From NCBI GenBank assembly GCA_030704615.1, contig CM060732.1:41106001-41170000 (forward strand): a DNA stretch of 64,000 nucleotides, read 5' to 3'. The DNA comes from Takakia lepidozioides (Eukaryota > Plantae > Bryophyta). A program made the translations under genes and the position numbers. Position 1 is the first letter of the stretch. Every line of letters begins with the position of its first letter. Shown piece after piece: positions 20,951 through 50,869 of the stretch. The notes beneath the pieces are model-generated. The model did no database searches and was not told where the DNA came from. It saw nothing but the letters and a program-made list of their open reading frames with translations.

Positions 20951-21637
20951 TTTGGTATTTTCTCCCCCTTCTCCCTTGGTTAAGCCAGTCGATGTGCAGT
21001 AAAAGAAAACCACACTCCACACAGCAGACGCAATGCAATTTTAAGTAAAGGGACAAAATCCAAACTTAAATATGTGCGAAACCCTCTCTTTGTTCTTTGA
21101 CAGTGGATGTCTTTCTTCTTAAATACAAATAAAACAATCAATTAGTAAAAAAATTCTCATCAATTAGCCAAAACAATCATTGATTTTTTGTTAAGAAACA
21201 ACGAACTTAAGAGAGGACGGAGGCCCTTAAAACATTGATTAAGTGTGGTGACCAATGAAAATTATCCAGATATTACTGGATGAAATCTTGGTGAGCTATG
21301 TATGAAAATTAGTCCTGATGGAACATTGGATGAAAACAAGTACATTCATATCTTTCTTTAATCGATGAATTTCAGTCCTGATCGGATGCAACTACAACAT
21401 TCATTCACAGAAGAAAAATTGGGACACCGGATTTAAATAGGCACAACACAACAAACCAAGACTCAGTTGGTCTTTCTCAATCTTTTATGTAAAAATAAAA
21501 TAAAAATAAAAGTGGGGGGAGACAATGTCTTTCTCAACCATCAGATTCATGCTGCCAACAACACAACAAGAGTTCACTTTCAATGTTTGTTTGCACAGAA
21601 CCCTAAAACTTTGTTGCTTTCGTCACAAACAGAAAGC

Positions 21638-21890
21638 TACCAGTCAGTAGCTCAGTTGGATAGTGCGCCACCAAGTGCCACCCAGATGATTCTGGGGTCA
21701 AATCCTACTACCTTGATGTGTGTGGTATGTTCTTCTTCCCCACCCTCCAAGGGGGTTGGTATCCTGTGAACAGAGTGTGAGCATGCTCAACTCCCGTGAG
21801 CACAACCCACGGTCACGGGGGTTGTATGTTTTTAAACCGTGGTCATAGGAGTTACATGTTTTGAGGCATGTGCATTTATAGGGTAGCACC
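21638..21890 (+). mobile_element. tRNA-derived SINE (family 1)
   Basis: ACCAGTCAGTAGCTCAGTTGGATAGTGC...GGGTCAAATCC head shared with 29520-29708 (-) and 48927-49120; 3' limit approximate. Confidence 0.6.
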
Positions 21891-21954: not shown

Positions 21955-22080
21955 TTGATGTGGTTGTGGGTTCAAACCACGGTCTAGTGTGTCATGAAGG
22001 TGTCCACCTTTCAGCTGGAAGGCCGTAGCCCTTGTGGTGAAGAGACACCATAAGTTACGCTCCCTTGGGGAGGCGTCATG
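21955..22080 (+). mobile_element. SINE family 2, 5'-truncated
   Basis: Homologous to 22801-22982 (-) and 53097-53260; box B GGGTTCAAACC. Confidence 0.75.
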
Positions 22081-22800: not shown

Positions 22801-22982
22801 TATATATATATATATATGACGCCTCCCGAAGAAAGCGTAACTTATGGAGTCACTTCACCCTAAAGGGCTACGCCTTCCGCTAGGAAGGTGGACACCTTCA
22901 TGACACACCAGACCGTGGTTTGAACCCACAACCACATCCAACGTGGTATGTGCCCATTACCACTGGGCTACATGCTGGTTGT
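22801..22982 (-). mobile_element. SINE family 2, full length with (TA)n tail
   Basis: Box A TAGCCCAGTGG, box B GGTTCAAACC, structured 3' half, (AT)n tail; direct repeat CTACCTTACTTT on both sides. Confidence 0.85.
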
Positions 22983-23000
22983 CTACCTTACTTTACTTTA

Positions 23001-23240
23001 AGTAGTAATTTCGGGAGTGAGAGTATTAATTTTACATTCAGAAATTAAAATCAAGTAGTAGTTTCGGGAGTGAGAGTATTAATTTTGCATTCAGAAATTA
23101 AAATCAAGTAGTAGTTTCGGGGGTGAGAGTTTTAATTTCGCATTGCGAAATTAAAATTAAGTGGTAGTTTCGGGAGTGAGAGTTTTAATTTCGCATTGAG
23201 AAATTGAAATTAAGTGGTAGTTTCGGGAGTGAGAGTTTCG
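23001..23240. repeat. 53-bp tandem repeat, ~4.5 copies
   Basis: Unit AGTAGTAGTTTCGGGAGTGAGAGTATTAATTTTGCATTCAGAAATTAAAATCA at 23001, 23054, 23107, 23160 and 23213. Confidence 0.92.
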
Positions 23241-23650: not shown

Positions 23651-23889
23651 CCCTTTTGGTTGTGTCCCACGTGGACGCCTGTATGGCGAGGTTACTGTGA
23701 AAGAGGTTATTTTCTCCTCTCACTATTGAGGCTTTTTTTTTTTTCGATTCTATATAGGCATGGACGTGGCTACAAAATGTATAAGATAAGTGCAAAGGTG
23801 GCAACTATTAGAATGTCCACCTAGATCCCACCTGGCTACAAGTTTGCTGATCTACTATACAATCTGGCAATTTTCTTACAAAATTCGTT

Positions 23890-24349: not shown

Positions 24350-27033
24350 CAGTGTTGTACTGTTTATCAACTTTTGATGATAACATGCGGGTCCTGGTAG
24401 AAAGAATTCCTAATTTCATGCTCTGGCAAGTTCTCGAATATTAAAAAAATTATGGATTTTATTACCATTGAGTATCAATATTGCATGTTCTGTAATTTTC
24501 GACTCGGTTATCAAGACTGGTATTGCAAAATGTTATATTGCATGTTAACTATCAACAGAGGGTATCAATAGTTCAGTCAACATAGTGCACACATTCAAAA
24601 CATGTATGCTTCAACATATGCATAATGCAACTACATGTCTTTGAGCACATAGCCATAGTCATCCTCACTAAGCACATAATTTGTAGATGCACATAATCTA
24701 TAGCTGCTCCTACTGCCAACACAGCTAACTACAGATAATTGCAGTAATCCATAGCTGCTCCTGAACTCCATATACTCCAGAAAACCCAACCTGCAAGATA
24801 GTAGAATAACAACAGATTTAGCAACTAAACAAGAACCACAACCAATGACAAACAAACTTAAAGTTGATCAACAAGATCATACATACAGAAATGAAAGGTG
24901 AGGGCATACCTATTCATCACTCTCAAACAAGCCTGCTTCAGAAATGAGCTCCTCATTCTCGTCAACAAGTGTATCCTCGGATTCAAAGAAATCAGCCAAT
25001 TTTCCTGCTTCAACTAGCTTAAAATTTGTCCTGGCATCACTTGACCAATTTTTATAGATCATGACCAGCTTGTCAAGGTTTTCCACACCAAGACGACAAC
25101 GTCGCAATGAAGTGAGCACACCAACCACTGAGAAAATCCTCTCGGTTTCTATTTGAGAACCTAGAATGCCTAAAATCTGCCGAGCAAGATAACCAACATT
25201 GGGAAATCGAGTCTCATTTTCATACCACCATTTCAGAGGGTCCAGGTTTTCAACATCCTCAACATGATACCGACGAAACAAAGACAACTCAGACTTCAAC
25301 AACCCTTCACTTGCTTCCTCATTGGAAGCTGCTGAACCAAACAAAGAATCACTTGGAGCTGGCTGAACCACCACTGGATTCACAGTTTGAGCACGTTCGG
25401 GACTTAAATGGACCAAAACAATGTTTAGAAGAGGGCACCCCTTCCAATGTCATCCACGATACACTGCAATCCTTTGAATCGGGGATCCAGCATTAACGCA
25501 AGTATGTCATGTGCTTTGACTTGTGAGAAAGTTTCAGCAAAAGCCAGAAAAGGCCGTAACACGTCAGTGACCTGAAAAGCCATGCGAGCATACAGTATCT
25601 CTATTTCTTGGTCAAAGTCCCCACAACGCAATGGAGGCACAACATTAGCTCTCCGTTCAACAATCCTCTTCATCGTGCTCATAATGGCAAGAGCAGAGTG
25701 TAGTGCATCTGACAGCAGCCAATAACCTCTACGCTGGTTAAGTAAACATTGATGTACAACAGGGTTTAGTGTTTTAGTCACTGCCCGAGCAATGGCCCAT
25801 GTGGAGCCAATGGGCACCCTGGATTGCAGAGCAGTGGTCTGCCGTGTATAACAGATGTTGATAGCCTGGGCATACTCCAAAGTCTCTTGGAACAATATAA
25901 CTTTGGAAGCAAAACGAGTTTTCACCGGGGTCTTAAATTTCCGCCAAGGCATGCCTGCCTCTATGCAAGCCTTGTCCCATTCCACCTTTCCCTTCCCTGA
26001 TTTTTTTGTCCAAATAATGGTTTTTTGAAGGGCAGCTTGTGCATCTTTTAGGCTTACTTCCTTCATGCCCATACCAACCTTGTCTTGGTTTGTGGCATAC
26101 TGACATGCCTTCGGCATAACAACCAAAGCAGGAACCAGGATATGGAGCAGAACGGTTAAGTGGCGTACATGAAACCACCGATGTAAGGGCAGTAGTAAGG
26201 GTGCCCAAATTGGCGCATTCATCTTTCACATATGTCAGTGCCACTTTGTTTGTCAAGTTGTACTTTGCCAAGAGGGCCTTTATCTATTGGGCAAGAGCTG
26301 TTCCACAAGTGTTGGGTGCCTCAAACAAGCCAACAGTTATGTGACATGGAATCCACACTTCATTGATGAAGTTGATGACCACGGCAAAAGTATCACATCC
26401 AGATCTACTCATCCACAAATCAAAGGTAGTTATCACGGTAGTAGCTTGTGCAATGCAAGGCAGCACATATCATTCCATAGTTTTCTACAACAGATTAGGA
26501 AGATGTTCCTTCACAAGTTGCTTCTTGGTAGGAAATACCACCTGACCACATTGACGCATAACCAACCGCCTCAACCATGGATTCTCTACTGCAGACAAGG
26601 CATATAGCCCTTAGCAATCAGGAGCACTAAATCCTCAATGAAACGTATCTGAGCAGGGTTGTCCTTCCGGCCATTCAAAGCTGATTGTTGTTGCGATTGA
26701 ATGCCCCCTCCCAAATCCCTAGCAGATCGTGCTCCTGAATCCACCAAATCTGCCGCTGATTGCATTCATAAACCTACCATATCTGCCGCCTTAGCCCATG
26801 CTCATACCAGGAACGACAACGGGAGGAGGCGGCTGGTATCAACAACGAGTAGAAACGGCAAACCCTAACCCCAGCCGGTAGGGTTTCTGAGGAAAAACCA
26901 CCTTACGAAGACTCGATAGGTCTGTTACAGGTGAAATTTTCCTACAACCTATAACTGTCGGGTAGGGTACCTGGTAACCGGGTTGATGACCGGGTTGATA
27001 ACCGGGTCAACCCTCTATACCAGTCCAACATTG
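24350..27033 (-). mobile_element. hAT DNA transposon (defective)
   Basis: TIRs CAGTGTTGTACTG / CAGTCCAACATTG (11/13 match); exact 8-bp TSD GTTTTATC (24342-24349 / 27034-27041); subterminal ACCGGGT repeats. Confidence 0.95.
24910..26660 (-). pseudogene. hAT transposase pseudogene
   Basis: TFDLWMS (first D), YVKDECANL, KTRF, MLDPRFK, and the dimerisation domain DPLKWW...SQIETERIFS, spread over frameshifted ORFs. Confidence 0.92.
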
Positions 27034-28849: not shown

Positions 28850-29400
28850 GGAAACACATGTTGCGCGAAGGGGTGAAGCCCAACCGCATCACATTTGTTT
28901 GTGTTTACAATGCGTATGAAAGCCTGGGAGCCCTGGAAAAGCAAGGACAATGTGGTGAGGGCACCTTCTTCGTCAACCTATTTCAGCCTGTTTTGCGCTC
29001 TCATCAGACTCAGCCTTGAGATGCATATTGAATTCTGTAAGTTAGCTCATTGGGTGGATCTGTGGTGGTTTGGAATGACTTTGACAAGTAACTGCCGATG
29101 TGGCAGCAGGAAAGTATCCAAAAACAGATAACAGAGATGAGGATCTACCAAGCATGGGTGTGGTACGAATTCTTTGGAGACCTATGAGCAAATGATGCAT
29201 GAAGGGGTGAAGCCCCACCACATCACGTTCATTTGTGTTTGCAATGCGTGTGCAAGCCTGGGAGCCCTGGAAAAGGGCAAAGAGGTCCATGATGACATCG
29301 TCAATGCTGGAACTGTACCAGATGTCATTATGAACACTGCCCTAGTGGACATGTATGCCAAATGTGGGTGTATTAAAGATGCAAAGGGAGTTTTCATTTG
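28850..29400 (+). pseudogene. PLS-class PPR fragments
   Basis: ETYEQMMHEGVKPHHITFICVCNACASLGALEKGKEVHDDIVNAGTVPDVIMNTALVDMYAKCG; 5' part homologous to 35320-35490. Confidence 0.85.
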
Positions 29401-29519
29401 GACATGAAATGATTGACACTGGCCTTTTTATGCAGTTGGCTGTTTCACTTGGTAACAATAATACTCTTTACTAGGAAAAGGTAGCAAAAGCACTGTACCC
29501 ATTTTTCTCGAAGGAGAAG

Positions 29520-29708
29520 ACAACAACATCCTACTACGCCCCTTAGTAGTGAGAGGAGAAAATAACCTCTTTCATTTATGCGTCATGGAGGCAAATGAGC
29601 GGGACACCGCCTAGGAACCATACCACACCCGTCAGTAGCAAGATTTGATCCCAAAATCATTTGGGTGGAACTCAGTGCACTTAACCAACTGAGCTACTGA
29701 CTGTTGGT
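29520..29708 (-). mobile_element. tRNA-derived SINE (family 1)
   Basis: CAGTCAGTAGCTCAGTTGGTTAAGTGC...GGATCAAATC head; tail GAAAGAGGTTATTTTCTCCTCTCACTA also present at 23700-23727. Confidence 0.65.
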
Positions 29709-29740
29709 TTTTTTCTGCTTATAAAAACAAAACAAAAAAA

Positions 29741-29783
29741 CTAGGGCTTCACGTTGCTCCGCACTACTAGCGACGAAGTCTGA
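29741..29783 (-). mobile_element. Helitron-like 3' terminus
   Basis: Reverse complement TCGTCGCTAGTAGTGCGGAGCAACGTGAAGCCCTAG|T, matching 519-554. Confidence 0.5.
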
Positions 29784-30049
29784 TAACTATGTTCAATTTT
29801 CACAAAAAGGGGTGGGTTATCCCTATGGTGTTATATACAAACATCCCGTATTTCATTGTTTTTCAGAAGAGTATGGCGAAGTGTTGCCCAAGCTATCATG
29901 TCACGTCTCCACATTTCCTTGTTTGATGCAGCTAATTCTATCTACGCCCAAGAAGTGAGGGGGAGGGATTTAGCATTTGTTTTGTCTAGAGCGGAAGTCG
30001 GTTGAGAATTTATTTATTTATTTATTTAAAGGAAACCTAGGAACGACTG

Positions 30050-30215
30050 CTCACAATTCAAGCCCTTGAGGAGGGGGAAAATTTAACTCAGATAAGCCAT
30101 TAGGCACACAGGTGGGAATGTCACCACCAGACCAACCGGTCACGAACAATCCACACATCAGGCAAGGCAGCGGGTTTGAACCCCCAACCACCAGGGCGAC
30201 ACACTGTGCACTTAC
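30050..30215 (-). mobile_element. SINE family 3 abutting a PPR fragment
   Basis: AAGTGCACAGTGTGTCGCCCTGGTGGTT..GGTTCAAACCC...TTTTCCCCCTCCTCAAGGGC; homologous to 38545-38722. Confidence 0.65.
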
Positions 30216-31135
30216 TAGCTCCAAAGCCTCCATCCCGCATCCTTGTTGTGCATATCCTGCAATCATCGCACTCCACGACACCACATCTCATTCAGTCATA
30301 CTGTCGAACACTCCCTTTGCATCCTCGATGCACTCACATTTGACATATGTCCAGCGCACAGACGTGATGTGGTCGGGCTTCACCCCTTCCCCCATCATTT
30401 GCTCATAGGTCTCCAAGGCCTCCATCCCACGCCCCTGCTGTGCATACTCTGCAAGCTGCATCGCGTTCCACGACACCACATCTTGTTCAGCCATTTGAAA
30501 ACTCCCTTCGCATCCTTCATGCACCCACATTTGGCATACATGTCCACCAGGGCAGTGTTCAGGATGACATCTGGTACAAATCCATTTTTGACGATGTCAC
30601 CATGGACCTCTTCCCCCTTTTCCAGAGCTCCTAGGCTTGCACACGCATTGCAAACACAAACAAATGTGTTGCGGTTGGGCTTCACCCCTTCGCACATCAA
30701 TTGCTCATAGGTCTCCAAAGCCTCCATCCCGCATCCTTGGTGTGTATATCCTGCAATCATCGCACTCCACGGCACCACATCTCATTCAGCCATACTGTTG
30801 AACACTCCCTTTGCATCCTCGATGCACTCACATTTGACATACATGTCCAGCAGGGTAGTGTTCAGAATGACATCGGGTACAATTCCAGATTTGACGATGT
30901 CACCATGGACCTCTTTGCACCTTTCCAGGGCTGCCAGGCTTGCACACGCATTGTCATCGCACTCCACGACACCACATCTCATTCAGCCATACTGTCAAAT
31001 ACTCCCTTCATACATGTCCACGAGGGTATTGTTCAAAATGACACTTGGTACAATTGCAGCTCTAACAATGTCGCCATGGACCTCTTTCGCCCTTTTCCAG
31101 AGCTGCCAGGTTTGCACACGCATTGCAAATGCACA
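30216..31135 (-). pseudogene. tandem PLS-PPR triplets, frameshifted
   Basis: Repeated VVSWSAMIAGYAQQGCGMEALE / CNACASL.ALE.G.EVHGDIVK / NTALVDMYAKCGC motifs in several broken ORFs. Confidence 0.9.
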
Positions 31136-31169
31136 CAATCTCAACAAGTCAATTGTGGTCATAAGATAC

Positions 31170-31268
31170 CTTTTTCCAGTCTCTGCCATATTTTTGAAAT
31201 GCTTGATAGAAGAGCTCCAGGTCCTCTTTGCTCCAGGGAGGTCCAAACATGTCCAACAATTTGCGCTT
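31170..31268 (-). pseudogene. ALY: isolated exon of ALWAYS EARLY (Lin-9 homologue), N-terminal SANT/Myb region
   Basis: AG|99 nt|GT, translating as [33 protein letters not shown] (plant ALY consensus [33 protein letters not shown]). No other ALY exons recognised nearby. Not in the ORF track. Confidence 0.85.
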
Positions 31269-32149
31269 CTAATCACCAGCCCGCCCACTCACCTCAGTCC
31301 CATAAACTGCATTCAAGCAGCATCCAAAATTGGATTTCACTCTTGCTCACGCTGGGTGTGCTACCCATCTGCCCAGTCCCAATGACACCATTGCTCCTGG
31401 ATATGGAATTTTGTCGGGATCCAACAACCTGCAACCTGACATCACCAAAATCAGGCAAATTGTTCAATTGAATGCCTTTGATGAGGATGGATCTATAGGC
31501 AAAACCAGAAAGAGAGCTCAATTTGCTGGGACAGAAAGTGCTATTCCTTCTTCAAGTTGCTTAAAGGGCTCATGCTCAGGTCTATGGGCACTCCCCTCTT
31601 TCATTATCACCACGTTTAACAAAACAATGGTCACAAAAATAATGACCAAGAAGGCTGAAACATGGAAAAAGAGCAACCTTCAGCTTTGAATGTCAGTTTC
31701 ACAGTTTGCATTTATTGTTTCCAGTGAACACTGGTTATAGGGAGATTATGGCGGACAGACAACAATTACAATCTAGTCAATGTAAGATTAGGTTTGAAAC
31801 TTGGGTTTAGCTTCAAGCAGATGTGGGACTTTTGCAACCAGACACAACCTGACATACCCTTTGTGCTCATGGAAAATCAATCATGGAGACTCATTGTGCA
31901 GGTCTGAAACAAGGAAGTAAGGTGTAATCTAAGCTGCATTTTTTTTCCATACCCCCTTGCTGCCCCTAGAGCAATCCTTATTCATGTGGGCCGAACCACG
32001 TGTTGCAACAAGAATAGTGTCATAAAGGCTGATTGTAGTGTGGTCCACAACACATCATGTTGAACTCACAGAGAGACATTTATCTTCAAGTTCATCCATT
32101 TAGTAGGCCACCATGTGGGCAGGGGGAGAGAGAATGTGCTCATCTTGTC

Positions 32150-32210
32150 TCTGTTCTGCCCAAACTGGCTATGGGGTCTATGGCCACAATGCTACAGCAA
32201 ACGTCTTATG
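32150..32210 (+). mobile_element. LINE 3' end fragment (family of 5527-6310)
   Basis: GCCCAAACTGGCTATGGGGTCTATGGCCACAATGCTACAGCAAACGTCTTATG next to (GA)n. Confidence 0.7.
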
Positions 32211-32921
32211 CGTGGAACAGAGAGAGAGAGAAAGAAAGAAAACAAAGACACCAACCATTCTGCTCCAAAACAATGACGCCTGGTGCATAATGTAGGTGAT
32301 GTCAAGTACAAAATCACAGGTGAAACCAGCCTATATCTGATGTGGCATGCAGAGAAAGGAGCCTGATACACTTTGTTACAAAATGTAAACTGGATTCGGG
32401 GCTTCATCTTATATGGCATTTGCCAAGCATTTATCATGCCCACAAACTTTGTGCATTTTCTGCAATGTGAAGACATCTACAGATATAAGCAAGTTGCTGG
32501 TTGAGGGTCAAGATCACATCTAGTCAATGGGCCTACTAAGAAATCCTCAGAAATCTGCTTGTAGTCACTTCTTTGTCCTGATTGTTGATACCCATGATGT
32601 CGCGGCCCTTTGCCTTGAGGGCAGGGGGTCGGGACACGAGAGGGGCTGCCCCTGTGGTGGGGGCAGTGGCGACAATAGATGCGGGGGCTGAAGCACAGAG
32701 GCGCTCACTAGGTGGAGCCCCGCACACCGGATTGCGGTGGGGGTGGTTCCACGAGGGATGGTATTAGCTTAGTAGGACTTAGTGGGGGTGGCATAGGACT
32801 CACCATGAGGGCGAAGACCTTGTGGTGGGAGTCGTGGGGAGTCTTGGGACTCATCACGGTCCAATGAGACCGTGGTGGGTGGGCCAAGACTCACCGCGAC
32901 TCATCACCGGGAATCGAGGGT

Positions 32922-33386
32922 TTTCGTGGTGGTTCGCCATAAAATGGCATGGTTGTTTGTGAAACCCCCACGGACAGTCACAGAAGTATATATAGGGAGT
33001 AGTAACCCCGAGAACGGTGCAAGCCCATTGGTGACCAAAAACTAGTGAGTAAGCGTGCGAGCCGGAAAGCGACCAAGGTGTGGGGAGCTATTCCGGACTG
33101 CCATCGACCAAAGGGAATTTCCACTAGGCCCAAATTGGGAGAGGGTCTTGTGGAGGAGTAAAGAGGGACCGTTATGTCTCGGTGAGCAGCCGAAGCTCCG
33201 AGTTGGCCCGGCGGCCAGTTAGGGAGTTAGGCGCGTTCATCAAAGCGAGTAACTATGACTTGAAGGGGAGCTTACCGAAGTGAGGTGCGCGACACATGAC
33301 AGCTCTAGGCCTGCGCGGACTCGAATACCCTGTGTAAGACTCATGGCGACTAAGGTGTACCTCTGAGGAACTGCTATGCCGCTACA
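32922..33386 (-). mobile_element. probable 5' LTR plus PBS of an LTR retrotransposon (Ty3/gypsy-like), truncated
   Basis: The - strand starts TGTAGCGGC (33386) and ends ...GCCA (32945), followed after 5 nt by PBS-like TGGCGAACCAC; GC-rich leader downstream. Confidence 0.5.
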
Positions 33387-34399
33387 AAGATGCAATTATG
33401 TGACTGACAGAGTGAAGAAAGATTGCACCAATGACAGGTAATAGGCTGCCCTTACTCAGGAAATGGATTGAACTCTGGCTATCAACTTGTGCGTGGTGAA
33501 TGCACAAGTCTACTTAACATCTCCAAACGGGTGTAAGCGATTGCGAGCTGGTATGTGCAGACACATACTTGGACTTCAAGTCTAGTGAATAAATCTGATC
33601 CAAGCAATGCATGACATTCTATTGAAACCTCCAGTCCTCCCACCTTGCATCAAATTTACTCTCGGTAGTGAAGTGCTATCGTATATTTACCTTGTATGCT
33701 ATTATAATGCAGAGATCTGATCAGAAGTGCTACTCAAGATGGCACATTCACGCTCCAATGTGCACGTGCCCTCCTATCCTGGACCCACAATGATGCACCA
33801 CCCATGGAAAAATCCACTTGCCGTCACAACAAATATCCTGGCTCTGAAAAAGGAACCACCCATTTCATCTTTTTATCTCACAACTTCCCACGTGCAAGCC
33901 ACTTGATGTAAGGTGGAGGAAACATTTCAAAAGGTTTAACTATTTGTGAAGCAGAATAGTTTCCAAAATGAGCTTGATGTATATAGTATTGCTTGTGCAT
34001 TGGCTTACAGGTCTGATGCCTCTCTACCCCATGAACCATCAAATCACTTGCACTCTGTAGCTAGGCTACTCGGTCACCATAGATTTGAGCTTACACACAG
34101 TGGGAGAACACAAACCTATTGCTTCTTGAAACGGATGGTGCCCATCACACCCAACATCATCCCCATGCCCTGCAATAGCACAATGACTGCAGCAAAGAAG
34201 GGAGATAAATGACAATCCAAACTGCCACATTGGCTAAAAATTGTATGCAGAAAACAATGTAGATGAGTCTCTCTTGTGATGCATGCGATTTCAAGAAGAT
34301 GCCATTTGCAGTTGGCATGCAAGTGTCCACGAGAGGATTTAGGGTAGGAGTTGCACCTGCATACTCCTGGAGGAAATCCATTGTGGATGGTGACAAAGC

Positions 34400-35322
34400 A
34401 GCGTTCGGATTCCACCATGCACAGCCAAAAAGGTCCACCATGCAGCCATAATGTTCCACAGTAGCATTGAGCCCATGATCTTGACTCATGGAATCAAAAT
34501 AATGTTGGCCTTCATCCAGTAGGCCCCCGTGATTACATGCCAATAGAAGACATACAAAGGTGATACCATTCACCCTTCCTGTTGCATGTGTTCAAATACG
34601 TGGAGAGCCTCCCTACTATATTTGACATGCATCCTTCATGCTTCCACATTTGGCATACATGACCACAAGGGCAGTCTCCACGACACCACATCTCGTTCAG
34701 CCAGAGTGTTAAAAACTCCCTTCGCATCCTCAATGCACCCACATTTGGTAAATATGTCCACCAGTGCAGTGTTCAAGATGACATTTGGTACAATTCCAGC
34801 TTTGACGATGTCACCATGGACCTCTTTCCCCTTTTCCAGAGCCCCCAGGCTTGCACACGCATTGCAAACACAAACAAACGTGATGTGGTAGGGCTTCACC
34901 CCTTCGCGCAGCATTTGCTCATAGGTCTCCAAAGCATTAATCCTACCACACCCATGCTTGGTAAATCTTGCCAACATTATATTCCACGTGATCAAAGATC
35001 GTTGAGGCATTATGTTGAACACTTGGTGAGCATCCATGATGCTCCCGCACTTGACATACATGTTGACAAGGGTGTTGAGTAGGAAAACATTTTGGATAAT
35101 GTGAGTATGCACCTGCTTTCCAGCTTCCAGACCTGTCATCTTGATGCACTTAAGCAAGAGACAGACATACATATCTACATCTGTTGAAATGCCTCCTTGG
35201 TTTAGAGTCTGTAGAGCCTCTGTCAGTCTGCCTGTCGCACAAAGTATCTTCACATGCCCAGAAGTGCCAGAAGAAGCATTGTGGACTCCCTCTCTTGATC
35301 CTCTTTCAGAAGCTGTGGTCAT
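34400..35322 (-). pseudogene. PLS-class PPR gene (RNA-editing-factor type), internally deleted and 3'-truncated
   Basis: N-terminus LCATGRLTEAL..., L/S/P motifs, then L2-S2 (ITFVCLLLACNHGGLLDEGQHYFDSMSQDHG..ATVEHYGCMVDLFG); frameshifts; no E/DYW domain seen. Confidence 0.88.
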
Positions 35323-35504
35323 GGTTGAGGTACTTCCCTGTTGTCACATTGGCAGTATCATGTCAAAGTCACTCCAAACTATCAAAGGTTCACTCAACCA
35401 GCTAACTTGCAAATTCAACATGAAAATTCAGGGCCCATTCTGATAAGAGGGAGAAACAGGGTGAAATGTGTTGAAGAAGGTGCCTTCATTAGCAGTGCCT
35501 GGTT

Positions 35505-35790
35505 CTACCAGCAGGGAAGGCGCTGACAAGGCTGCTGACAATCTAGCCAACAAGCTGGTTATCAAAGGCTTGAGATTGAAGCTTATGTGGGGCAAAACCC
35601 AGGTTGCAAAATCTGAACTTGAGGGGACGGCTGAAGGAGAAGATAGTGGAAGAGGAAACCTTGGAAGCGGAATTCTATCTCATACAGGAATGCTTCCACG
35701 AGCAGTTATCTCCCAACAACAACAACAACATCAGCAAGTCGCTGGCCAAGATCAAGCTCCACTCAACTGTTTCAACGTACCTCCGCATGT
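35505..35790 (+). pseudogene. RBM22: fragment of RBM22/Cwc2-like splicing factor (plant MAC5), RRM C-terminal part
   Basis: SSREGADKAADNLANKLVIKGLRLKLMWGK...ILSHTGMLPRAVISQQQ; zinc-finger exons absent. Confidence 0.8.
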
Positions 35791-36439
35791 CGAAGAATTG
35801 AACTTGATGGTCCTCCACAGATGCAAACCACTACCAACATGGACTGAATATGACGAAATCGTGAATGAGCATTCATGCAGTCTATGTGATGGGCACTAGG
35901 GATTTCCTCTACCACTTGTTCCACCAAGAGCAGGTGGTGTCTGAGAGACAAACAACTCTGGGTTTGAGTTCTTGGATTTGCAGAGGACACGATACAAGTT
36001 ACCACATGGATTCCATAACAGGCCTGGCCAATAGGCAAAGAAGCATCTGCAGCCTACTGGAGTTTCATAAACTGTAGGTGAAGTTTTGAAACAAACAGAC
36101 AATTGGTCTATTTTTCCTAAACACCACAGCAACTGACCTCTCTTTTCTCTTCCGTCCTCCCTCCATTTCTCCTTCTTCCAAAGTGGGGTGGGGTCTGTGG
36201 CATATAGCAATGGCAACCCCTCTCATGAGTAGATCTATGGAGCTTAAGAAGTCTTCCACTAGGAGGATCAGAAATGCTTGGTCTTACATCAGATCAAAGA
36301 AGCAACGTGGTCAGCGTTTGGGAAGCCACCTCACAAGGATGATCAACGTTCGTTCTACCAATGAGAAGCCTTGGCCTGTGAAATTGATGCAATGTGGGAC
36401 GATTTTCAACGGCGTTCACAAGCCTAAGCAAGCAAAATG

Positions 36440-36839
36440 ATGTGATTTGCGGAGCCTTTGCAGGAAAACCGAAGCTAATCGAATGGGGGAAAAGCCACGG
36501 TGTGCATTGAGCAGCGAGACTGTTGAGAGCTTTGCAGCTTGCAAGGTGAACGATGGCGGAAAACGCAGAGCTCCTGCAATTCAAGTACTTCAAGAACCGG
36601 GCAGTCCGGGCACGCTCCGAAAACACTTGGCACTTTGGGGTTTTTTGGGAGGGCAGTCCGGGCAGGAACCAAACAAATTGACGACGAAACGTGGCGACGA
36701 TGACATGGTGACGATGACGTGGTGACAATGACATGACGACGATGACATGGCAATGATGACGTGGCGAAGAAAACGTGGCACTATGGCACCCTATTCCTGC
36801 TCTACACTAAACTAGCTTCCGACCTTCGGTCGTCGCTAG
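36440..36839 (+). mobile_element. GC-rich repeat with Helitron-like hairpin-CTAG end
   Basis: GATGACGTGG repeats; CGACC-TTC-GGTCG hairpin then TCGCTAG; shares GTCGTCGCTAG with 518-528. The next base is A, not the canonical T. Confidence 0.35.
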
Positions 36840-38119
36840 AATGTGGTTTCCTTACTATTTTACTCCGGGATTCCTGAACATAATCACTGGAAGAAAAACG
36901 CGGAATAACCACTGGCCCTTTAACCACCACTGTCTTTTTCCACTCTATAAACCACTAGTAACCACTTGCCAGTGGTTAATCCCAATGAAATGCCACGGTG
37001 GCATCACAGACAATGGTTGGAAGTGGTTTCAACCACTCAGTAGTCCACGTGTAATAATTTGTTTTTATTTATTATTATTTATTTGGTAATATATTTCATT
37101 TAATAAATATAATATTCCACGTGGACGAGTGCAGTGGTACATTGTGAGTGGTTATAGACACCTCGGCGATGGGAAGTGGTTGAAACCACTTGCTACTCCA
37201 CGTGTAATAATTCAAATTTTATTTGTGATTTATGATTTAGAAATATATTTTAATTCATAAATATAATATTCCACGTGGACGGGGACAGTGCACGTTGATC
37301 TTGAGTGGTTAAAGACACCTCATTGATTTGTACCACTTTGATAGTGGTGGAGAGTGGGTGTTGAAAGATACTGCAGTAATTGGAACCACTATTCTAGTGG
37401 TTGCTCATGAGTGGTTGCCTACACAACAGTGATTGGTACCATTTTTGGGTGATACATGAAAAACTTTAAGTGGTTTGTGCAGCTGTGACAGACTTTGAAA
37501 AACAGACAAGTGGCTAGACCATTGTGGGATGATGCTATTGAACAAATGGTTCCAACAATAAACTTTATTCTGAATTTGAAACATATTCGTCACCCTCTGA
37601 ATCACTTTACAACTGGAATAGCGGTTGGTTGCACAAATGCCGCTTGAATGGTAGCCAACATAGCCGGGTCTTCTTTATTTAGAGCCGTGGGACCATCTAA
37701 TGACCTAGGTATTGGCTGATCTGATAAGATAGACGTCGATTGGCACGCCACTCATCACCACATGCCTCTCTGTCTGCTGTGAACTGTGCCTTCTCTGTTG
37801 CATACTTTTTGTCACAAAATGGCAACAAGAATGACACATGTTAGCAATGAAGTATTACATTACTTAGCAAAAAATACCTAGCATGAATGCTACTTTAAAA
37901 ACCACTATTTCAAACCACTGGAGGAGTGAGCAGAATTACTTATAAATGAACATGCTCTTCCAATAAGTCACTCACTCAGACATTCCGTTACTACAGCATT
38001 GGTTATAATCAGGATGAACCACTGACATTTGTGACTTTGTGGGTGGTTTGATTACACTGGTGACAGTCAGAATTGAAATTGAATTTGATATGAATAAGGT
38101 GCAATGAAAAGAAGTACTC

Positions 38120-38460
38120 ACTGCACCCAATGAGCCATGACATTGGTATTGTTCAGCACATACAAAATTTGTGTTGCATCTCTCCTAGCTCCAGTCATGT
38201 CCCGCTTTTTGCCGACACCTTCGAAGACCTCGTCCTCAACCCCTTCCTCCGCATTTGCATCCCAAGTCCGCCGTTGAGTTGCATCAAATGATTATATATT
38301 CAGTCATGAACCCCATGGCCTCATCCAGAACATACCCTGTAGCCGTACTCCCTTCTGGCTTTGCGTAATTCCTAACGTATCCCTTAAGATCTTTCATGTA
38401 ACGCTCCATGGGATACATCCACCGTGAAGACACCGGATGAACAATTTTGTTTATCTCCAT
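38120..38460 (-). pseudogene. CACTA TnpD-like transposase fragment (DUF4218 region)
   Basis: PVSSRWMYPMERYMKDLKGYVRNYAKPEGS..GYVLDEAMGFMTEY, then a frameshift. Confidence 0.88.
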
Positions 38461-38544
38461 GGAATACATCTATGTGCTCACTTGTAACCACTAAAATGAA
38501 TTTAAAAAAAAAAATCAAAGTACAAAAGATTAAAAAAAAACACA

Positions 38545-38722
38545 TCGGCTAATAAGTGCAGAGTGTGTCGCCCTGGTGGTTCAGGGTTCAAACCCGCTGC
38601 ATTACCCCATGTGTGGGATTGTTTGTGACGACGGTATGTCTGGGCGTTGATCCTCCTGTAGGTCTCATGGCCCATAAATGAAAGGGGTTAATTTTTCCCC
38701 CTCCTCAAGGGCATGAGGTTTC
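38545..38722 (+). mobile_element. SINE family 3
   Basis: Homologous to 30050-30215; box B GGTTCAAACCC. Confidence 0.6.
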
Positions 38723-39579
38723 TTTTAAAATTTATAAAAAAAACAGAAACAAAAAGTTGCTTATAGGGTTTGTAAAAAGGTTAAAAAAACTTAAAAAGCT
38801 GCCCATCACGTATGTACAATATATACATACTTTTGGGGGGAGATTTCAAATGTGTGCATGTAGTGTACTGGCAAGGGCTCTTCCTTTGTGTCGACGGGTC
38901 GCGGGTTTAAACTACCCCCGTTGTTTTTTTTCCCCTCATGCACTAAGCCCCACTAAGCCCTCGTGCAGGTTGGTCTTAGCAGGTCGCGTTTAGGGTTTAG
39001 GCTTGCTCAACTGCACCGTGGTGGTTCTCATGGACAATCCAACATTACCTTACTACAGACACAAGCAGCATACACAAGAGGTCCGTTTGGGTTCATGGTC
39101 TGTCAAATCCTCCATGGGTCATGACATAAGGTCGACTACAATGTGGTGAGGGCACCTTCTTCTTCGACCTATTTCAGCCTGTTTTGCCCTCTCATCAGAC
39201 TCGGCCTTGAATTTGCAGCACGGAGCAGAGCTCGCATGAGTTTTTTATAGATCCTTCATGATGGTGGGACAATCGCAATCGCAAGGTGTGGCTTTTTCTT
39301 AATGTAGGATGTGAAGAAGTTTGTCCATCCTGCAAATGTGGGCTTTTGGCTCCTGTTAGTACCGTGATTTGGTATTCTTCCTGATGTTTACAAGGTTCTT
39401 GGGAGAGTCAACGTGGTCTTAGCATGTCATGTTTCAATCTTTGCTCGCTTAGCTGCACCATGGTGGTTCTCATGGACCAATGCGATGTTTTTTTTTCCCC
39501 TCAAGCACTAAGCCCCACTAAGCCCTATCACTGCTGCGCACTTAAGTCCTCGCTGATGTTTACAAGGTTCTTGGGAGAG

Positions 39580-41200
39580 TCAGCTTGGTCCAGGGTATGC
39601 ACGGTAGGGACGTGGGATGGAGGCTTCGAAGACCTATGAGCAAATGATGGGGGAAGCAAATCGTGTTTGTGTGCATTTGCAATGCTTGTGCAAGCCTGGC
39701 AGCTCTCGAGAAGGGCAAGAGGTGCATGGGGATATCATCAAAGCTGGAATTGTGCCATATGTCAATCTGAACATGCCCCTGGCAGCTTTGGAAAAGGGGA
39801 AAGAGGTCCATGGCGTCATCTTCAGAGCTGGAATTGTATCAGATGTCATTCTGAACAATACCCTGGTGAACATGTTTGCAAAATGTGGGTGCATCTAGGA
39901 TGAAAAGGGAGTGTTCGACACTATGGCTGAACGAGATGTGGTGTCGTGGAGTGCGATGCTTTGCAGGGTATGCACGGCAGGGACGTGGGATGGAGGCTTT
40001 GGAGAGCTATGAGCAGATGATGGGGGAAGCACATCATGTTTATGTTCATCTGCAATGTGCGTGCAAGCCTGGCATCCCTGGAGAAGGGCAAGAGGTGCAT
40101 GGGGATATCATCAAAGCTGGAATTGTGCCAAGTGTCAATCTGAACACTGCCCTGGCAGCTTAGGGGAAAGAGGTCCATGGCGACATCTTCAGAGTTGGAA
40201 TTGTACCAGATGTCATTCTGAACAAAACCCTGATGAACATGGTTGCAAAATGTGGGTGCATCTAGGATGCAAAGGGAGTGTTCGACACTATGGCTGAACG
40301 AGATGTGGTGTCGTGTAGTGCGATGCTTGCAAGGTATGCACGACAAGGACATGGGATGGAGGCTTTGGAGAGCTATGAGCAAAGGATGGGGGAAGCACGT
40401 CATTTTTGTGTGCATTTGCAATGTGCGTGCAAGCCTGGCAGCCTTGGAGAAGGGCAAGAGGTGCATGGGGATATCATCAAAGCTGGAATTGTGCCAAATG
40501 TCAATCTGAACACTGCCCTGGCAGCTTAGGGGAAAGAGGTCCATGGCGATATCATCAGAGTTGGAATTGTACCAGATGTCATTCTGAACAAAACCCTAGT
40601 GAACATGGCTGCAAAATGTGGGTGATCTCCTGCCTGTGAGAAGAGACAAGACGCCGCCATTGCGCATCCCCAGGAGCTCGTCCGGCATGGGCACAAAGTA
40701 GTAGAATGCAAAGGGAGTGTTGGACACTATGGCTGAACGAGATGTGGTGTCGTGGAGTGCGATGCTTGCAAGGTATGCATGGCAGGGATGTGGGATGGAG
40801 GTTTTGGAGAGCTATGAGCAAAGGATGGGGGAAGCACGTCATGTTTGTGTGCATTTGCAATGTGCGTGCAAGCCGGGCAGCCTTGGAGAAGGGCAAGAGG
40901 TGCATGGGGATATCATCAAAGCTGGAATTGTGCCAAATGTCAATCTGAACACTCCCCTGGTAGCTTAGGGGAAAGAGGTCCATGGCGACATCTTCAGAGT
41001 TGGAATTGTACCAGATGTCATTATGAACAATACCCTAGTGAATATGTTTGCAAAATGTGGGTGCATCTAGGATGCAAAGGGAGTGTTGGACACTATGGCT
41101 GAACGAGATGTGGTGTCGTGGAGTGCGATGCTTGCATGGTATGCACGGCAGGGACGTGGGATGGAGGCTTTGGAGAGCTATGAACGAATGATGGGGGAAG
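39580..41200 (+). repeat. tandem array of a dead ~366-bp PPR triplet (4+ copies) inside the CACTA element
   Basis: Units start at about 39602, 39975, 40341, 40780 and 41145; they share deletions, a duplicated L-motif half and a TGCATCTAG stop. Confidence 0.92.
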
Positions 41201-41352
41201 GGGGGGCACCTTCTTCAATAGCACAACGGCTACGTGTGGATAGATGGTCAACTGGAAACAGCAATGGCAACAGCGCAATTGATAGAACAAGGCCCACTGC
41301 TAATGAAGGTACCTTCTTCAACATATTTCATTCTGAATTCCCCTGCTATCAA

Positions 41353-41455
41353 AGTCGTCCCTAAGTATCCAAAAACAGGTAACAGATATGAGAAAAAACT
41401 GTGGGATGAATACTTTTCTGACCCCAGTAACTGGTGGGACAACCGAGGCAAAAAG
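41353..41455 (+). pseudogene. fragment encoding an OSB-type PDF motif (first half)
   Basis: LWDEYFSDPSNWWDNRGKK followed by a GT donor; matches the W..FF.NP..WWDNR..K half of the PDF motif of organellar ssDNA-binding proteins. Confidence 0.7.
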
Positions 41456-41529
41456 GTGAATGCCTGTCATATTACAGAGTGTAGCAAATGCAATTGTCCA
41501 TAGGAACTAGTGTGATAAGTTGAGTTGGG

Positions 41530-41770
41530 TGCAATTGCACTCTCCCTTTCCTCTCTGCTTCTGTTTGCTATTCAAAGGTAGGATTCCTGCCCTTAGTTTA
41601 AATTTCAGTCTGGTGCCGAGAGTGGGTAGACCCTTGAGGTCATCCATGGTGTCCTCCCCCATGTCACAGACTGGAAACAAGTCCAGGGAAGTTTTCTGCC
41701 TAACTTCATTTTCATCAGACAATTTTCTGGAAACGGACATGGCTTTGGACACTACAGCCTCTAAGTCAGT
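41530..41770 (-). mobile_element. internal LINE fragment (same family as 5527-6310)
   Basis: Near-identical peptide ...[38 protein letters not shown]. Confidence 0.9.
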
Positions 41771-41819
41771 AGGGTTGGGGCATTTGCTGGAACAATTCTA
41801 AAAGGAGAATGTTTGTCAG

Positions 41820-41975
41820 ATTACCAGATGTCATTCTGAACACTGCCCTTGCCCTGGTGGACATGTATGCCAAATGTGGGTGCATCGAGGATGCCAAGGG
41901 AGTGTTCAACACTATGGCTGAACGAGATGTGGTGTCGTGGAGTGCGATGCTTGCGGGGTATGCACATCAGGGGTG
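41820..41975 (+). pseudogene. PPR S-P motif fragment
   Basis: PDVILNTALALVDMYAKCGCIEDAKGVFNTMAERDVVSWSAMLAGYAHQGCG. Confidence 0.85.
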
Positions 41976-42530
41976 CGGAGGACCCTGCCCCAGCCATCGT
42001 GAAGGGAGCTGAGAAAAAGTACATACGAAAATGAGAGCGTGTAACCAGAGCCACTGCTGCCAAAGGCACAAAGTCCTTGACTGATGCAAATGGTGACATA
42101 ACACCAAGTTCTAGCGGGAGTAAGAGTCAGGTGGGCCTTCAGGATGCTCCTCTCCATGCAGCAGTTTTCGTACTAGAGGTGAGCATGCATGCACTTGTTG
42201 GCTATCAGTTCTGTACAATGTGGTCATTTACATGTTGGGTACTTCAGACTATTAGTAGATGCATTGCTAAATGTAACTGCTAAGGGGTGTTGGGCGTGAT
42301 GTTTGCAGGCTGAGAAAGCCACTCTTGATATTGCCACCGACAGTGCACCAACTACGGCGCCTTAACCCCCCAATATCAACCCCCTGCCACAGTGGCAGAT
42401 ATTCTTATGCTACCAAAAGTACTCTACACTTTGAGTGATTGCTTATACTGGACGGTCCTCATTATCTAGTTTTCAATGTACACGTAAATCTTCATGGGTT
42501 GATTAATGTGGGTTTTATGGTGGGTGTTGT

Positions 42531-42806
42531 GTGCAGTTTAAGTTGAAGGACAAAATCAGCCTGTATGATCCTCATGTACCACGACACAGGGCTGCCAGTG
42601 GAATTGTCAATGGTGTGCTTGACAAAGACACATATCACTGTCGTGTTATACCTGAAGGATTGTGGCGGGTTGAGGTGAATGATATCTATATTGCCAATTG
42701 TGTCTTGCCTCACCCTAACGAGGAAGAGGTCCCACCGCAAACAATGTTGGAAGATGTCGTCGGTCTGAATTGTCTTTGGCCAGAGAAGAACATGAAGATG
42801 GCTTAG
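42531..42806 (+). pseudogene. probable C-terminal exon of the CACTA second (TnpA-like) ORF
   Basis: ASGIV...YHCRVIPEGLWRVEV......LPHPNEE..PPQT.LEDVVG...LWP pattern typical of CACTA accessory proteins; lies next to the right subterminal region. Confidence 0.55.
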
Positions 42807-44781
42807 AATTTCATTCGCCCGGGCGTAGACATTGCTGGCAGTGAGAAGAAGGTAGGAAAGCAGTTCAGTGTTCCTAGCATGCATGCAGAGACGCCGTGTA
42901 AAAGTTAGGCTCAGACTTTTATCATGGCTGGATTTTGTTGACAGTGTTCCAACACTAACTCTCTAGGATTCTATTCTAGTTTGTGGAGCTTGAATCCCCA
43001 ATGGTACTTCTTTCACTACACTAGTGGTATGTGTTCATCTAGTCATGTTCATAATCACTTGCACATCACTGTAATAGTGGTATAATTTAAAACTGTGGGA
43101 GTAGCCAAATGCACACAATGGCCCACATTACCACTCATATAGTGGTATAAGTAATCACCTATATATTAGTGTATTAGTGGTATGGATTCCTCCAGTGGTA
43201 TTCCTAATCACTTACACACCACTCTGTTAGTAATCATTCCAATCCATAGTTCCCACTCATAGAGACACCATGGATGACTCAAACAACTTACATACCACTC
43301 TGTGGGTAATCATTCCAATGACCTGCTGAGAGACGTCATCCACTCACATAACCTCGCTATGAATGATATTGCATATTCTCAGTTTTTATAGAAATGACTA
43401 TATGAGTCATTTTTATTTTGGGGTCATAGTGGTTTAGTGTCTTTTACCACTCAAAATGAGTGGTTAACATAGTGGTTATTCCGCGTTTTTCTTCTAGTGA
43501 ATTCTGGAATTTGAGGGTGGATTCTTCAGGATTCCTGAGTGAACTGTGGAGGCCGTAGTGTATTATGCGGTAGCTCCATCAAGCGGCAGAAATGGATTAC
43601 ACAGCGGAATACATGTGGTTCTGTAAGGAAGGCCTTCAATACCCTCTTTAGTTTGATCCCAGTTTTTTCGCAGCACCCTTCAACAACCAGAGCATGGCAC
43701 ACAACAAAAGCAAGGTTAGAAGCTGCTCACCTCGCGACTAAGCATTGCACGATTATTACGTCTCTCTGTTCTTGGGCGTCACAGAGATCCATGTGTGCTT
43801 TAAAGAAAGAAACATTGCAATCTATTCAGACGAACTCCCCAACAGCAACAGGGGCAATTAGGCGCAGCCCATTACAATTCCACCAAGAACTAAAAACGTT
43901 ATGGAAGACAGAGCAGTAGCAGCTTAAAGAGGGCACTGCTGCTACTTTCCCTCTCATCAAGCTGAAAGCAAAATATGTACTTGTGCTGAGGAAAGAGGGC
44001 ACTAATCCAGATCAACTGAACTTTTGTGGTCACTGGATACTCCTACCTCTGCACAGCGTTGAGGCACGAGCCATGCAGGGGGGAAATGTATCCCTATGCT
44101 CTTTGGGCTTCTTGTGGACATTGTCAAGTCCCTTCTTTTTTGCTCTCTTCTTCCCCCCTTCCTCCACTTTCTGTTCTGTGACAGTAGTGTTTGGTAAGTT
44201 CAAAATCTGACTTCCAAAGAATCGTAAATGGCATTTGTCGGAGAAGTTGAGGGCCTCTTTATCAGGAAGCCTAACAGCCAGGATATTCTCAATGGGGGAT
44301 ATCTAGCCATAATGTTAGGCCTGGAAGTGGGAATGTATATGCCCGGAAATGGAAGTAAGCATTTGGCTTTCCATATTATGAGGCATAAGGTCAGTAGATT
44401 CATTGCTGGAATAGGAAATTGCACCAGACTATACGTTAAGGATGTGTCCAGTCTGCTTGAAATTTATTTAAAGTCGAGTAAGCCTAATTAATTAAAGCTT
44501 TGGGAAAACTGTAATCTGGTGAGAAGCTACTCTTGAGATTCCCCACTTGAGACTGTTCTCCTTGTTCATTCCAGATTCAACAAAGAATGAACTCATGTAG
44601 CCTCCATGACTATGGTATACTACAAACTCATTAGAATGGTATTTCCTCTTGACAATTGTTGGACTTCATCATTAGTCCATAAAGTACTCCATGAAGCTCT
44701 GCGTGAAATCCAGGTTGAAGTAGGACCCAGGAATCCACCAATTCCTGGCAAGATCCAGTTCCATCCCCTTTCTCCCAATCC

Positions 44782-50643: not shown

Positions 50644-50869
50644 AGATAGGCTTGATCAGTCACTATCATCAGAATAGCTTGTGGCAGGAAACACGGCATT
50701 GCCTTCTTTCCGCAATTTTACTTCATAAAATATTTTTGCAAATAATTCATGAGCTTGAATTGCTTCGTGCAGTAATTTTTTGATCCTAGTCTCTTTGTCT
50801 CTCCTGGTTTCTGGCCTCTCTTCATTGTTTTCATCACTTGTGTCCACTTCTCCTTCATCAATTCATGTC

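Follow-up and report, generated by a model that had tools for sequence, protein, structure and literature searches.

Gene-capturing transposons of the CACTA type, known as Pack-CACTA (Pack-TYPE) elements, have been described in Arabidopsis (Catoni et al. 2019, PMC6379663), in soybean as Tgm-Express (PMC1947982) and in maize and rice (PMC8903248). They have CACT-type terminal inverted repeats, subterminal repeats and a 3-bp target duplication, lack a working transposase and contain pieces of multiple host genes that were taken from different loci. A CACTA carrying a PPR fragment has already been published in grapevine (Benjak et al. 2008, PMC2528002). This element, Cactavine-5, retains a transposase open reading frame (ORF) together with one PPR coding fragment and its 3′ UTR, and an antisense regulatory potential was discussed by its authors. 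PPR editing-factor families have grown to about 2000 members in certain early land plants, for which dispersed duplication by retroposition is the published route of expansion (MBE 2026, PMC13386178). Copies made by retroposition pass through RNA, lack introns and carry poly(A) tails.

Here, we describe a locus of the same gene family in the same kind of genome (hornworts, Takakia, lycophytes), with PPR copies likewise lying beside transposons. With a probability of roughly 70%, the locus is a graveyard in which fragments of PLS-class PPR genes were assembled at least partly by a DNA transposon. One of its clusters is cargo of a CACTA element that shares all of the Pack-CACTA features listed above and is thus a gene-capturing transposon of known kind, with unusual cargo. 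Unlike the named Pack-CACTAs, it resides in a seed-free plant, its cargo is a PLS-class PPR segment turned into a 366-nt tandem array, and a small DUF4218 transposase remnant has been kept. Like Cactavine-5 it carries a PPR coding fragment, but this fragment was amplified into an array, is accompanied by further gene fragments and, apart from that remnant, comes with no transposase. In contrast to products of retroposition, a Myb/SANT exon at the locus carries a piece of intron and one cluster lies between DNA-transposon ends, and therefore copying took place at the DNA level; none of the copies is functional.

Sequence and searches

The sequence examined was a 64-kb stretch of Takakia lepidozioides contig CM060732.1 (hereafter the window), which contains no N. 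PPR sequence was searched using tblastn with a 228-aa ORF as query, Pfam, and nhmmer, for which the full P-L-S at 34691-34995 in cluster 3 served as the reference triplet (306 nt). Broken pieces entered the searches individually.

PPR sequence in the window

A total of 20 PPR pieces, amounting to about 12 triplet equivalents, was obtained by nhmmer in the 64-kb window (E-values down to 3e-94). All are confined to 13 kb (28853-41979), and no PPR sequence was detected outside this interval when the whole 64 kb was searched using the reference triplet. The pieces are placed at 28853-28943 and 29140-29396 (plus strand, cluster 1), 30219-31140 (minus, cluster 2), 34364-35322 (minus, cluster 3), and 39594-41225 and 41820-41979 (plus), and include matches that exceed the Pfam cut-offs for PPR and PPR_2. 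Their motifs are arranged in P-L-S triplets with a periodicity of 303-306 nt (Pfam, TRF, nhmmer).

An earlier note, made from the sequence alone, had placed four clusters here, and the tblastn, Pfam and nhmmer positions deviate from it by no more than a few tens of bases. Its description of roughly ten near-identical copies of one triplet was right in that essentially one triplet recurs, but the pieces are 75-95% identical at the DNA level, for which "near-identical" is too strong. The neighbouring L-S pair of the gene itself (34999-35167, cluster 3) is just 46-70% identical to the other pieces. Also borne out were the lack of any intact copy, as stops, frameshifts and internal deletions occur in every cluster, and the interleaving with transposable-element pieces and foreign exons, here the CACTA element, SINE-like repeats, a Myb/SANT exon and an RBM22-like exon.

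The longest PPR ORF in the window is the 228-aa ORF. Its best relative by word search in the collections searched is a Diphasiastrum protein (47% identity), and local identity to a representative protein collection is about 44%. Neither an E2 nor a DYW domain was found in the 64-kb window by motif scan and tblastn; the motif scan gave no DYW signature, and the C-termini of 14 related proteins matched by tblastn only the L2-S2 at 34364-34573. No working editing factor is encoded here.

Amplification of one triplet by a transposon as the sole cause of the similarity among pieces was rejected, since related natural PPR proteins have homogeneous internal triplets. In related intact PPR proteins, internal triplets are up to 81-89% identical to each other, so part of the high triplet similarity may be native. 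Between clusters, substitutions show a mild third-position excess (86/68/107 over the three codon positions), so that the pieces may not all stem from one captured fragment, some going back to separate functional triplets or to other genes of a local family.

The CACTA element and its cargo

The following features were assigned to the element, by the evidence given in brackets.

36885-43499, strand not assigned: Pack-CACTA element of 6615 bp, non-autonomous (terminal repeats, target duplication, subterminal repeats)
38284-38469, minus: TNP2-type CACTA transposase remnant (DUF4218), 61 aa (Pfam PF13960, E 1e-15, 58 bits)
38548-38716, plus: SINE-like repeat, same family as 30058-30219 (repeat alignment)
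39138-39290, plus: module X, copy 3, with a degenerate "WWDNR" stretch (94.5% identical to 28947-29019; motif scan)
39594-41225, plus: PPR-derived tandem array, about 4.4 units (TRF score 1720; repeat alignments)
41290-41458, plus: module X, copy 4 (repeat alignment; sequence; motif scan)
41531-41769, strand not assigned: dispersed repeat in the cargo (93% identity to an inverted copy at 5685-5923)
41820-41979, plus: isolated PPR piece, S and start of P (Pfam PPR, 33.5 bits; tblastn, nhmmer)

The segment 36885-43499 is a genuine CACTA element of the non-autonomous kind, with the PPR cluster 39594-41979 as cargo. Its terminal inverted repeats, at 36885-36913 (CACTGGAAGAAAAACGCGGAATAACCACT) and 43471-43499 (the complement), are of the CACTG type and 29 nt long; they match at 28 of 29 positions, and no such pair was recovered by chance in 100 shuffles. 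Copies of a 3-bp target duplication, AAT, flank them at 36882-36884 and 43500-43502. Over about 36885-37500 and 43000-43470, subterminal repeats with AACCAC/ACCACT-type motifs reach 7-12 motifs per 250 bp vs 0.56 expected, a density confined within the window to these two ends. Apart from the transposase remnant, internal ORFs are short or without Pfam hit. The cargo consists of the PPR array, which is flanked on either side by module X and a PDF-like exon, the isolated PPR piece, and SINE-like insertions.

The array units follow each other at periods of 366, 366 and 439 nt (TRF period 366, 91% matches) and are 91-94% identical, with K2P divergences of 0.07-0.09. A frameshifting 14-nt deletion and an internal duplication of 83-89 nt are common to all full units, and an in-frame TAG to three. 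Because the units have this deletion, duplication and stop in common, the unit was dead already when it was amplified. Within the array, substitutions fall about equally on the three codon positions (46/36/36, p 0.49); it has decayed neutrally since amplification.

DNA transposons can hold internal minisatellites or tandem arrays. As in those, a short inner segment was expanded head-to-tail in a non-autonomous element; the repeat unit here differs in coming from a host coding repeat with a native periodicity of 306 nt. This native periodicity probably promoted misalignment and thereby formation of the array in the cargo.

Clusters 1 to 3 and module X

Outside the CACTA element, the following features were assigned.

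28853-28943, plus: PPR piece, end of P and first half of L (nhmmer 8e-18, triplet positions 77-167)
28947-29130, plus: module X, copy 1 (94.5% identical to 39138-39210; 76.5% to 35488-35331)
29140-29396, plus: PPR piece, P-L-S (nhmmer 2.5e-61; 88% identical to 34967-34712)
30058-30219, minus: SINE-like short repeat (78% identity to the inverted copy at 38548-38716)
30219-31140, minus: PPR cluster 2 (tblastn, nhmmer, TRF; Pfam PPR)
31152-31268, minus: Myb/SANT-domain exon, ALWAYS EARLY-like (Pfam Myb_DNA-binding, 33.1 bits, cut-off 24.4)
34364-35322, minus: PPR pseudogene, cluster 3 (228-aa ORF; Pfam; L2-S2 alignments; TRF)
35331-35510, minus: module X, copy 2
35468-35899, plus: RBM22-like exon fragment, end of RRM and C-terminal tail (phmmer vs PDB: Rbm22, E 1.2e-4)

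Each of these clusters is a dead mosaic of its own; across them, PPR sequence is joined at unique breakpoints to the Myb/SANT exon with part of its intron, the RBM22-like exon and module X. In cluster 1, the first piece is broken off after ALEK and then fused to module X; the second piece together with module X corresponds to a cluster-3-like copy without residues about 9-119, making cluster 1 a deletion derivative of such an X-plus-PPR copy.

On the minus strand, cluster 2 reads L-S, L-S, P-L-S, P, S and start of P, with a period of 303 nt and about 83% identity. The Myb/SANT exon, which retains about 30 nt of its own intron (GT donor), is fused straight onto the first L motif of this cluster, whose truncated end is abutted by the SINE-like repeat at 30058-30219. 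The latter is followed by a (TAAA)n tail, and no target duplication was seen at it. Box-B-like motifs tentatively suggest that the SINE-like repeats are tRNA-derived SINEs, with no Rfam hit and no tRNA detected by ARAGORN.

Cluster 3 comprises a start codon, an N-terminus, L-S, the full P-L-S, start of P, S and L2-S2, the last bearing a 21-nt duplication; it has several internal deletions and lacks E2 and DYW. The RBM22-like exon, whose alignment extends through KLMWG, stands head-to-head with module X and this pseudogene.

Module X is non-PPR sequence present in four copies, two of which adjoin a PPR start and two of which flank the CACTA array. Copy 2 stops 9 nt upstream of the cluster 3 start codon. 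Copy 4 shares one open frame with the "LWDEYFSDPSNWWDNRGKK" exon, which ends at a GT donor. This exon and the "WWDNR" stretch of copy 3 are tentatively taken by us to be OSB PDF-motif-like; no Pfam match was obtained for module X or the PDF-like exons. An assignment of module X to the RBM22 exon was rejected, as no RBM22 similarity was found upstream of about 35480.

What ties clusters 1 to 3 to transposons is their mosaic structure only.

Origin of the locus

The earlier note had proposed that DNA transposons or Helitrons copy and concatenate PPR modules, to be checked by an association with CACTA or Helitron ends. Within the window this association holds for the cluster at 39594-41979, which is bounded by CACTA ends, but was not detected for clusters 1 to 3, around which the window search yielded no matching CACTA ends or subterminal motifs, no other terminal-inverted-repeat pair and no repeated termini. 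Nor was a Helitron-like hairpin of at least 10 nt found at the cluster borders, a search that a single degenerate copy could escape without a family consensus. The further proposal, that amplified modules supply raw material for new RNA specificities, was not upheld: the array is a local tandem duplication of a frameshifted, stop-bearing unit that decayed neutrally. Every product in the window is dead, and therefore the locus does not show transposons creating new RNA specificities.

The CACTA element itself demonstrates the capture of cargo, the order of lesion before expansion and the subsequent neutral drift. This 6.6-kb CACTA lost most of its transposase and contains host-derived cargo. 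One PLS-derived unit inside it first gained the 14-nt deletion, the 83-89-nt duplication and the stop codon, and the damaged unit then grew to about 4.4 tandem copies via unequal recombination or replication slippage, after which the array drifted neutrally. Clusters 1 to 3 most likely originated as remnants of other gene-capturing elements, or in break-repair events using such sequences as templates, as we infer from their structure. A chimeric mosaic of pieces of other genes is present in all clusters, which is the usual signature of transposon-mediated capture and suggests such an origin.

An unlikely alternative is a decayed local cluster, formed by tandem and inverted duplication of one or more PPR-DYW genes and later broken up through deletions and the insertion of SINEs and transposons, from which the CACTA took its cargo in situ. 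Such a cluster would fit the confinement of every PPR piece of the 64 kb to 13 kb, the start codon, N-terminus and L2-S2 tail kept in gene order in cluster 3, and the codon-position bias between clusters, which hints at former coding constraint. Some of the cargo is also closest to pieces outside the element: module X is 94.5% identical to its copy in cluster 1, and the isolated PPR piece at 41820-41979 is 90-92% identical to cluster 2 vs 77-88% to the array of the same element. Moreover, Pack-CACTA elements are thought to take up DNA near their insertion sites (PMC6379663). The capture model of neighbouring insertions, however, leads one to expect terminal-repeat remnants inside the cargo, and none was found there. 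Simple duplication and decay does not yield PPR pieces fused to unrelated genes at differing breakpoints; remains of E2 or DYW are absent from every cluster, and the clusters have no non-PPR flank in common except module X.

It is highly improbable that the locus functions as a source of small RNAs, in which inverted PPR copies (cluster 1 vs cluster 2; clusters 2 and 3 vs the CACTA array) would form hairpins or dsRNA processed to siRNAs acting on the PPR family, much like microRNA genes born from inverted duplications of their target genes. The arms at 29140-29401 and 30491-30752 span 262 nt and are 84% complementary, with a longest perfect run of 28 nt; their predicted duplex energy is -394 kcal/mol vs -108 for shuffles, so dsRNA from inverted copies could physically form. 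Eudicots have PPR-targeting tasiRNAs and miR161. The antisense idea has also been raised for the grapevine CACTA (PMC2528002). An inverted layout, however, is what is expected for randomly oriented fragments, and the copies decay neutrally.

An assembly artefact, with reads from a large PPR family wrongly joined into the array and scattered copies, is scarcely credible: repeat-rich families misassemble easily, but the window contains no N, the array units differ by 6-9% with unit-specific changes (a 73-nt replacement in unit 3), the CACTA ends match and the target duplication is clean.

At this locus, PPR sequence was copied as DNA too, by a cut-and-paste transposon and, most likely, in a patchwork of the break-repair type that includes an intron piece. 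We regard as quite doubtful a broader reading, namely that a whole Pack-CACTA family of this genome repeatedly carries PLS-PPR segments and OSB/PDF-like exons and expands them into arrays within its elements. DNA transposons, and not retroposition alone, would then have spread and recombined PPR modules, and would at times have given rise to new PPR genes that are expressed, or to hairpin loci whose small RNAs control the family of roughly 2000 members. Arrays such as this one will inflate PPR counts, which is useful to annotators of PPR genes and transposons in similar genomes. About a third of the PPR pieces ride within the complete CACTA as an already-dead repeated unit and are no source of working genes.

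PPR pieces in the window

The 228-aa ORF at 34636-35322 (-) was identified as a fragment of a PPR protein, with the Pfam models PPR and PPR_2 both above their cut-offs. Using this ORF in tblastn and its only complete P-L-S (34691-34995, 306 nt; the reference triplet) in nhmmer, 20 PPR pieces were located in the 64-kb window, the rest of which was without further match in either search. Broken pieces were each searched on their own.

PPR pieces detected by tblastn and nhmmer
28853-28943 and 29140-29396 (+): PPR pieces (cluster 1)
30219-31140 (-): PPR pieces (cluster 2)
34364-35322 (-): PPR pieces (cluster 3)
39594-41225 (+): PPR pieces (fourth cluster)
41820-41979 (+): PPR piece (fourth cluster)

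Their content, approximately 12 triplet equivalents in four clusters, agrees with the roughly ten copies counted in an earlier note, and none of the 20 pieces is intact, as that note had also stated. Its description of the pieces as essentially one triplet was fair, since they are 75-95% identical to one another at the DNA level and only 46-70% identical to the first L-S pair of the 228-aa ORF gene (34999-35167); at these identities "near-identical" is too strong. E2 and DYW sequences were absent from the whole window, the most C-terminal remnant being an L2-S2 pair at 34364-34573. The 228-aa ORF had no exact match in the collections searched; its nearest protein there was 47% identical (word search), and representatives reached approximately 44%. 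Part of the similarity among the pieces may be native to the array of the parent gene, since internal triplets are very homogeneous in the long PPR proteins most similar to it in the databases, namely P0001 (mean 61%, maximum 81% amino-acid identity) and P0151 (72-89%).

A Pack-CACTA element and its cargo

Inverted repeats starting with CACTG were found at 36885-36913 and 43471-43499, matching at 28 of 29 positions (none expected by chance) and flanked on both sides by AAT (36882-36884 and 43500-43502). At both ends, subterminal motifs of the AACCAC/ACCACT type numbered 7-12 per 250 bp, compared to 0.56 expected, and they were absent from the rest of the window. The interior retains, as a remnant, 61 aa of a TNP2-type transposase (DUF4218; 38284-38469, -; E 1e-15), beyond which no further transposase sequence was found, and the following cargo.

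Cargo of the CACTA element (36885-43499)
38548-38716: SINE-like repeat
39138-39290: module X (an unnamed non-PPR sequence recurring beside PPR pieces) and a degenerate WWDNR stretch
39594-41225: PPR array
41290-41458: module X in frame with a "LWDEYFSDPSNWWDNRGKK" exon ending at a GT donor
41531-41769: dispersed repeat, 93% identical to 5685-5923
41820-41979: lone S-plus-P PPR piece

The 6615-bp element is a complete non-autonomous CACTA with host-derived cargo, i.e. a Pack-CACTA, an established kind of element (PMC6379663, PMC8903248). A CACTA from grapevine likewise carries a PPR fragment (PMC2528002). PDF/OSB is a tentative name for the exon beside module X: of the PDF motif (described in general terms in PMC6963530), the WWDNR half alone is present, and a Pfam search of this exon gave no match. 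Approximately 100 bp from the insertion site lies a 14/28-nt tandem repeat (TGGCGACGATGACA; 36682-36779).

Periods in the PPR array are 366, 366 and 439 nt, and its units are 91-94% identical. Following alignment to the reference triplet, all four full units displayed a 14-nt frame-shifting deletion at the P/L border and a duplication (83-89 nt) of the latter half of the L motif. A TAG replaces a GAG codon in the S motif of units 1, 2 and 4, and unit 3 carries a 73-nt replacement at this site. Lesions common to the units show that the unit was already dead when it was multiplied. Codon-position differences among units were even (46/36/36, p 0.49) and K2P distances were 0.07-0.09, which together indicate that the array decayed neutrally. 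Its growth was ordinary local tandem duplication within the CACTA, and the native 306-nt periodicity probably helped this amplification. Of the proposal that transposons copy and concatenate PPR modules, carriage by a transposon is borne out; the modules were concatenated, however, by local tandem duplication of a unit already dead. Two long antisense ORFs run through the array (39921-40544, -, 207 aa; 40579-40983, -, 134 aa) and are most likely a by-product of repeat composition rather than genes.

Structure and origin of clusters 1-3

Cluster 3 (-) consists of a start codon, N-terminus, L-S, one P-L-S, P-start, S and an L2-S2 with a 21-nt duplication, with several internal deletions between these parts. 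Module X (35331-35510) lies 9 nt upstream of its ATG, head-to-head with an RBM22-like exon (35468-35899; PDB Rbm22, E 1.2e-4, aligned through KLMWG); the RBM22 similarity, when extension was looked for, stopped short of module X. Cluster 1 comprises a PPR piece cut after ALEK, module X, and a start-region remnant directly joined to P-L-S, corresponding to a cluster-3-like copy without residues ~9-119. Cluster 2 starts with an ALWAYS EARLY-like Myb/SANT exon (Pfam Myb_DNA-binding, 33.1 bits) and approximately 30 nt of its intron, fused directly to L-S, L-S, P-L-S, P, S and P-start. Its end coincides exactly with the 5′ end of a SINE-like repeat (30058-30219, -), which has a (TAAA)n tail but lacks a target duplication; this repeat recurs within the CACTA. 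Instead of a simple insertion, this border could mark a chimeric retrocopy, produced when reverse transcriptase switched templates from SINE RNA to an RNA containing PPR sequence. A GC-rich block between clusters 2 and 3 (32500-33400) contains a 19-nt hairpin (32829-32902) and no ORFs of note.

All cluster junctions differ from one another, and, setting aside the SINE-like repeat at the end of cluster 2, module X is the only non-PPR sequence shared between clusters, CACTA cargo included (copies 1 and 3, the latter in the CACTA, are 94.5% identical). Around clusters 1-3 neither a second CACTA end (ends, subterminal motifs) nor another terminal-inverted-repeat pair was found, and no hairpin was found at their borders. 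The transposon association proposed earlier is proven for the CACTA cargo and plausible for clusters 1-3, where the mosaic make-up, including the intron piece, and shared module X point to it. The intron piece of cluster 2 shows copying as DNA. A decayed local PPR gene cluster is a live rival: differences between clusters by codon position (86/68/107) show a mild third-position excess (nominal p 0.009, pairs not being independent), so that some pieces may derive from different triplets or genes that were once functional.

Relation to PPR expansion

In the published view, the PPR families of hornworts, Takakia and lycophytes expanded mainly through dispersed duplication that bears signs of retroposition (PMC13386178). 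The present locus adds copying of PPR sequence at the DNA level, but of pseudogene fragments only. With no intact piece and an array unit dead before multiplication, nothing at the locus supports a workshop supplying raw material for new specificities. As to the dsRNA/siRNA suggested earlier, the arms 29140-29401 and 30491-30752 could, if transcribed, form dsRNA, with a predicted pairing of -394 kcal/mol (-108 kcal/mol for shuffles) and a 28-nt perfect run.

Other genes and repeats

The left-handed beta-helix domain of eIF2B-epsilon (Pfam LbH_EIF2B, E 3e-31) is encoded by an exon at 4173-4649 (+) that probably belongs to a real host gene. A 285-aa ORF (16265-17122, -) carries the MYB-CC motif LHEQLE of a PHR1-like transcription factor (E 1.9e-8). 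A hAT transposase remnant with the C-terminal dimerisation domain (24910-26222, -; E 7e-14) adjoins a 265-aa ORF without Pfam match. A PIF/Harbinger-type element (50058-51555) comprises a DDE_Tnp_4 transposase piece (51040-51555, -; E 1.4e-23) beside a Myb/SANT-like DNA-binding ORF (50058-50558, +). Box A/B motifs resembling those of tRNA (GTAGCTCAGTTGG...) mark a second short repeat, which ARAGORN and Rfam did not call; copies of it lie at 29547-29711 (-), 21633-21729 and 23698-23725. The 123-nt inverted-repeat pair at 21957-22079 and 22816-22938 (90% identical) spans ~980 bp in all, resembles a MITE-type element and is followed by a 53-nt tandem repeat (23000-23238).
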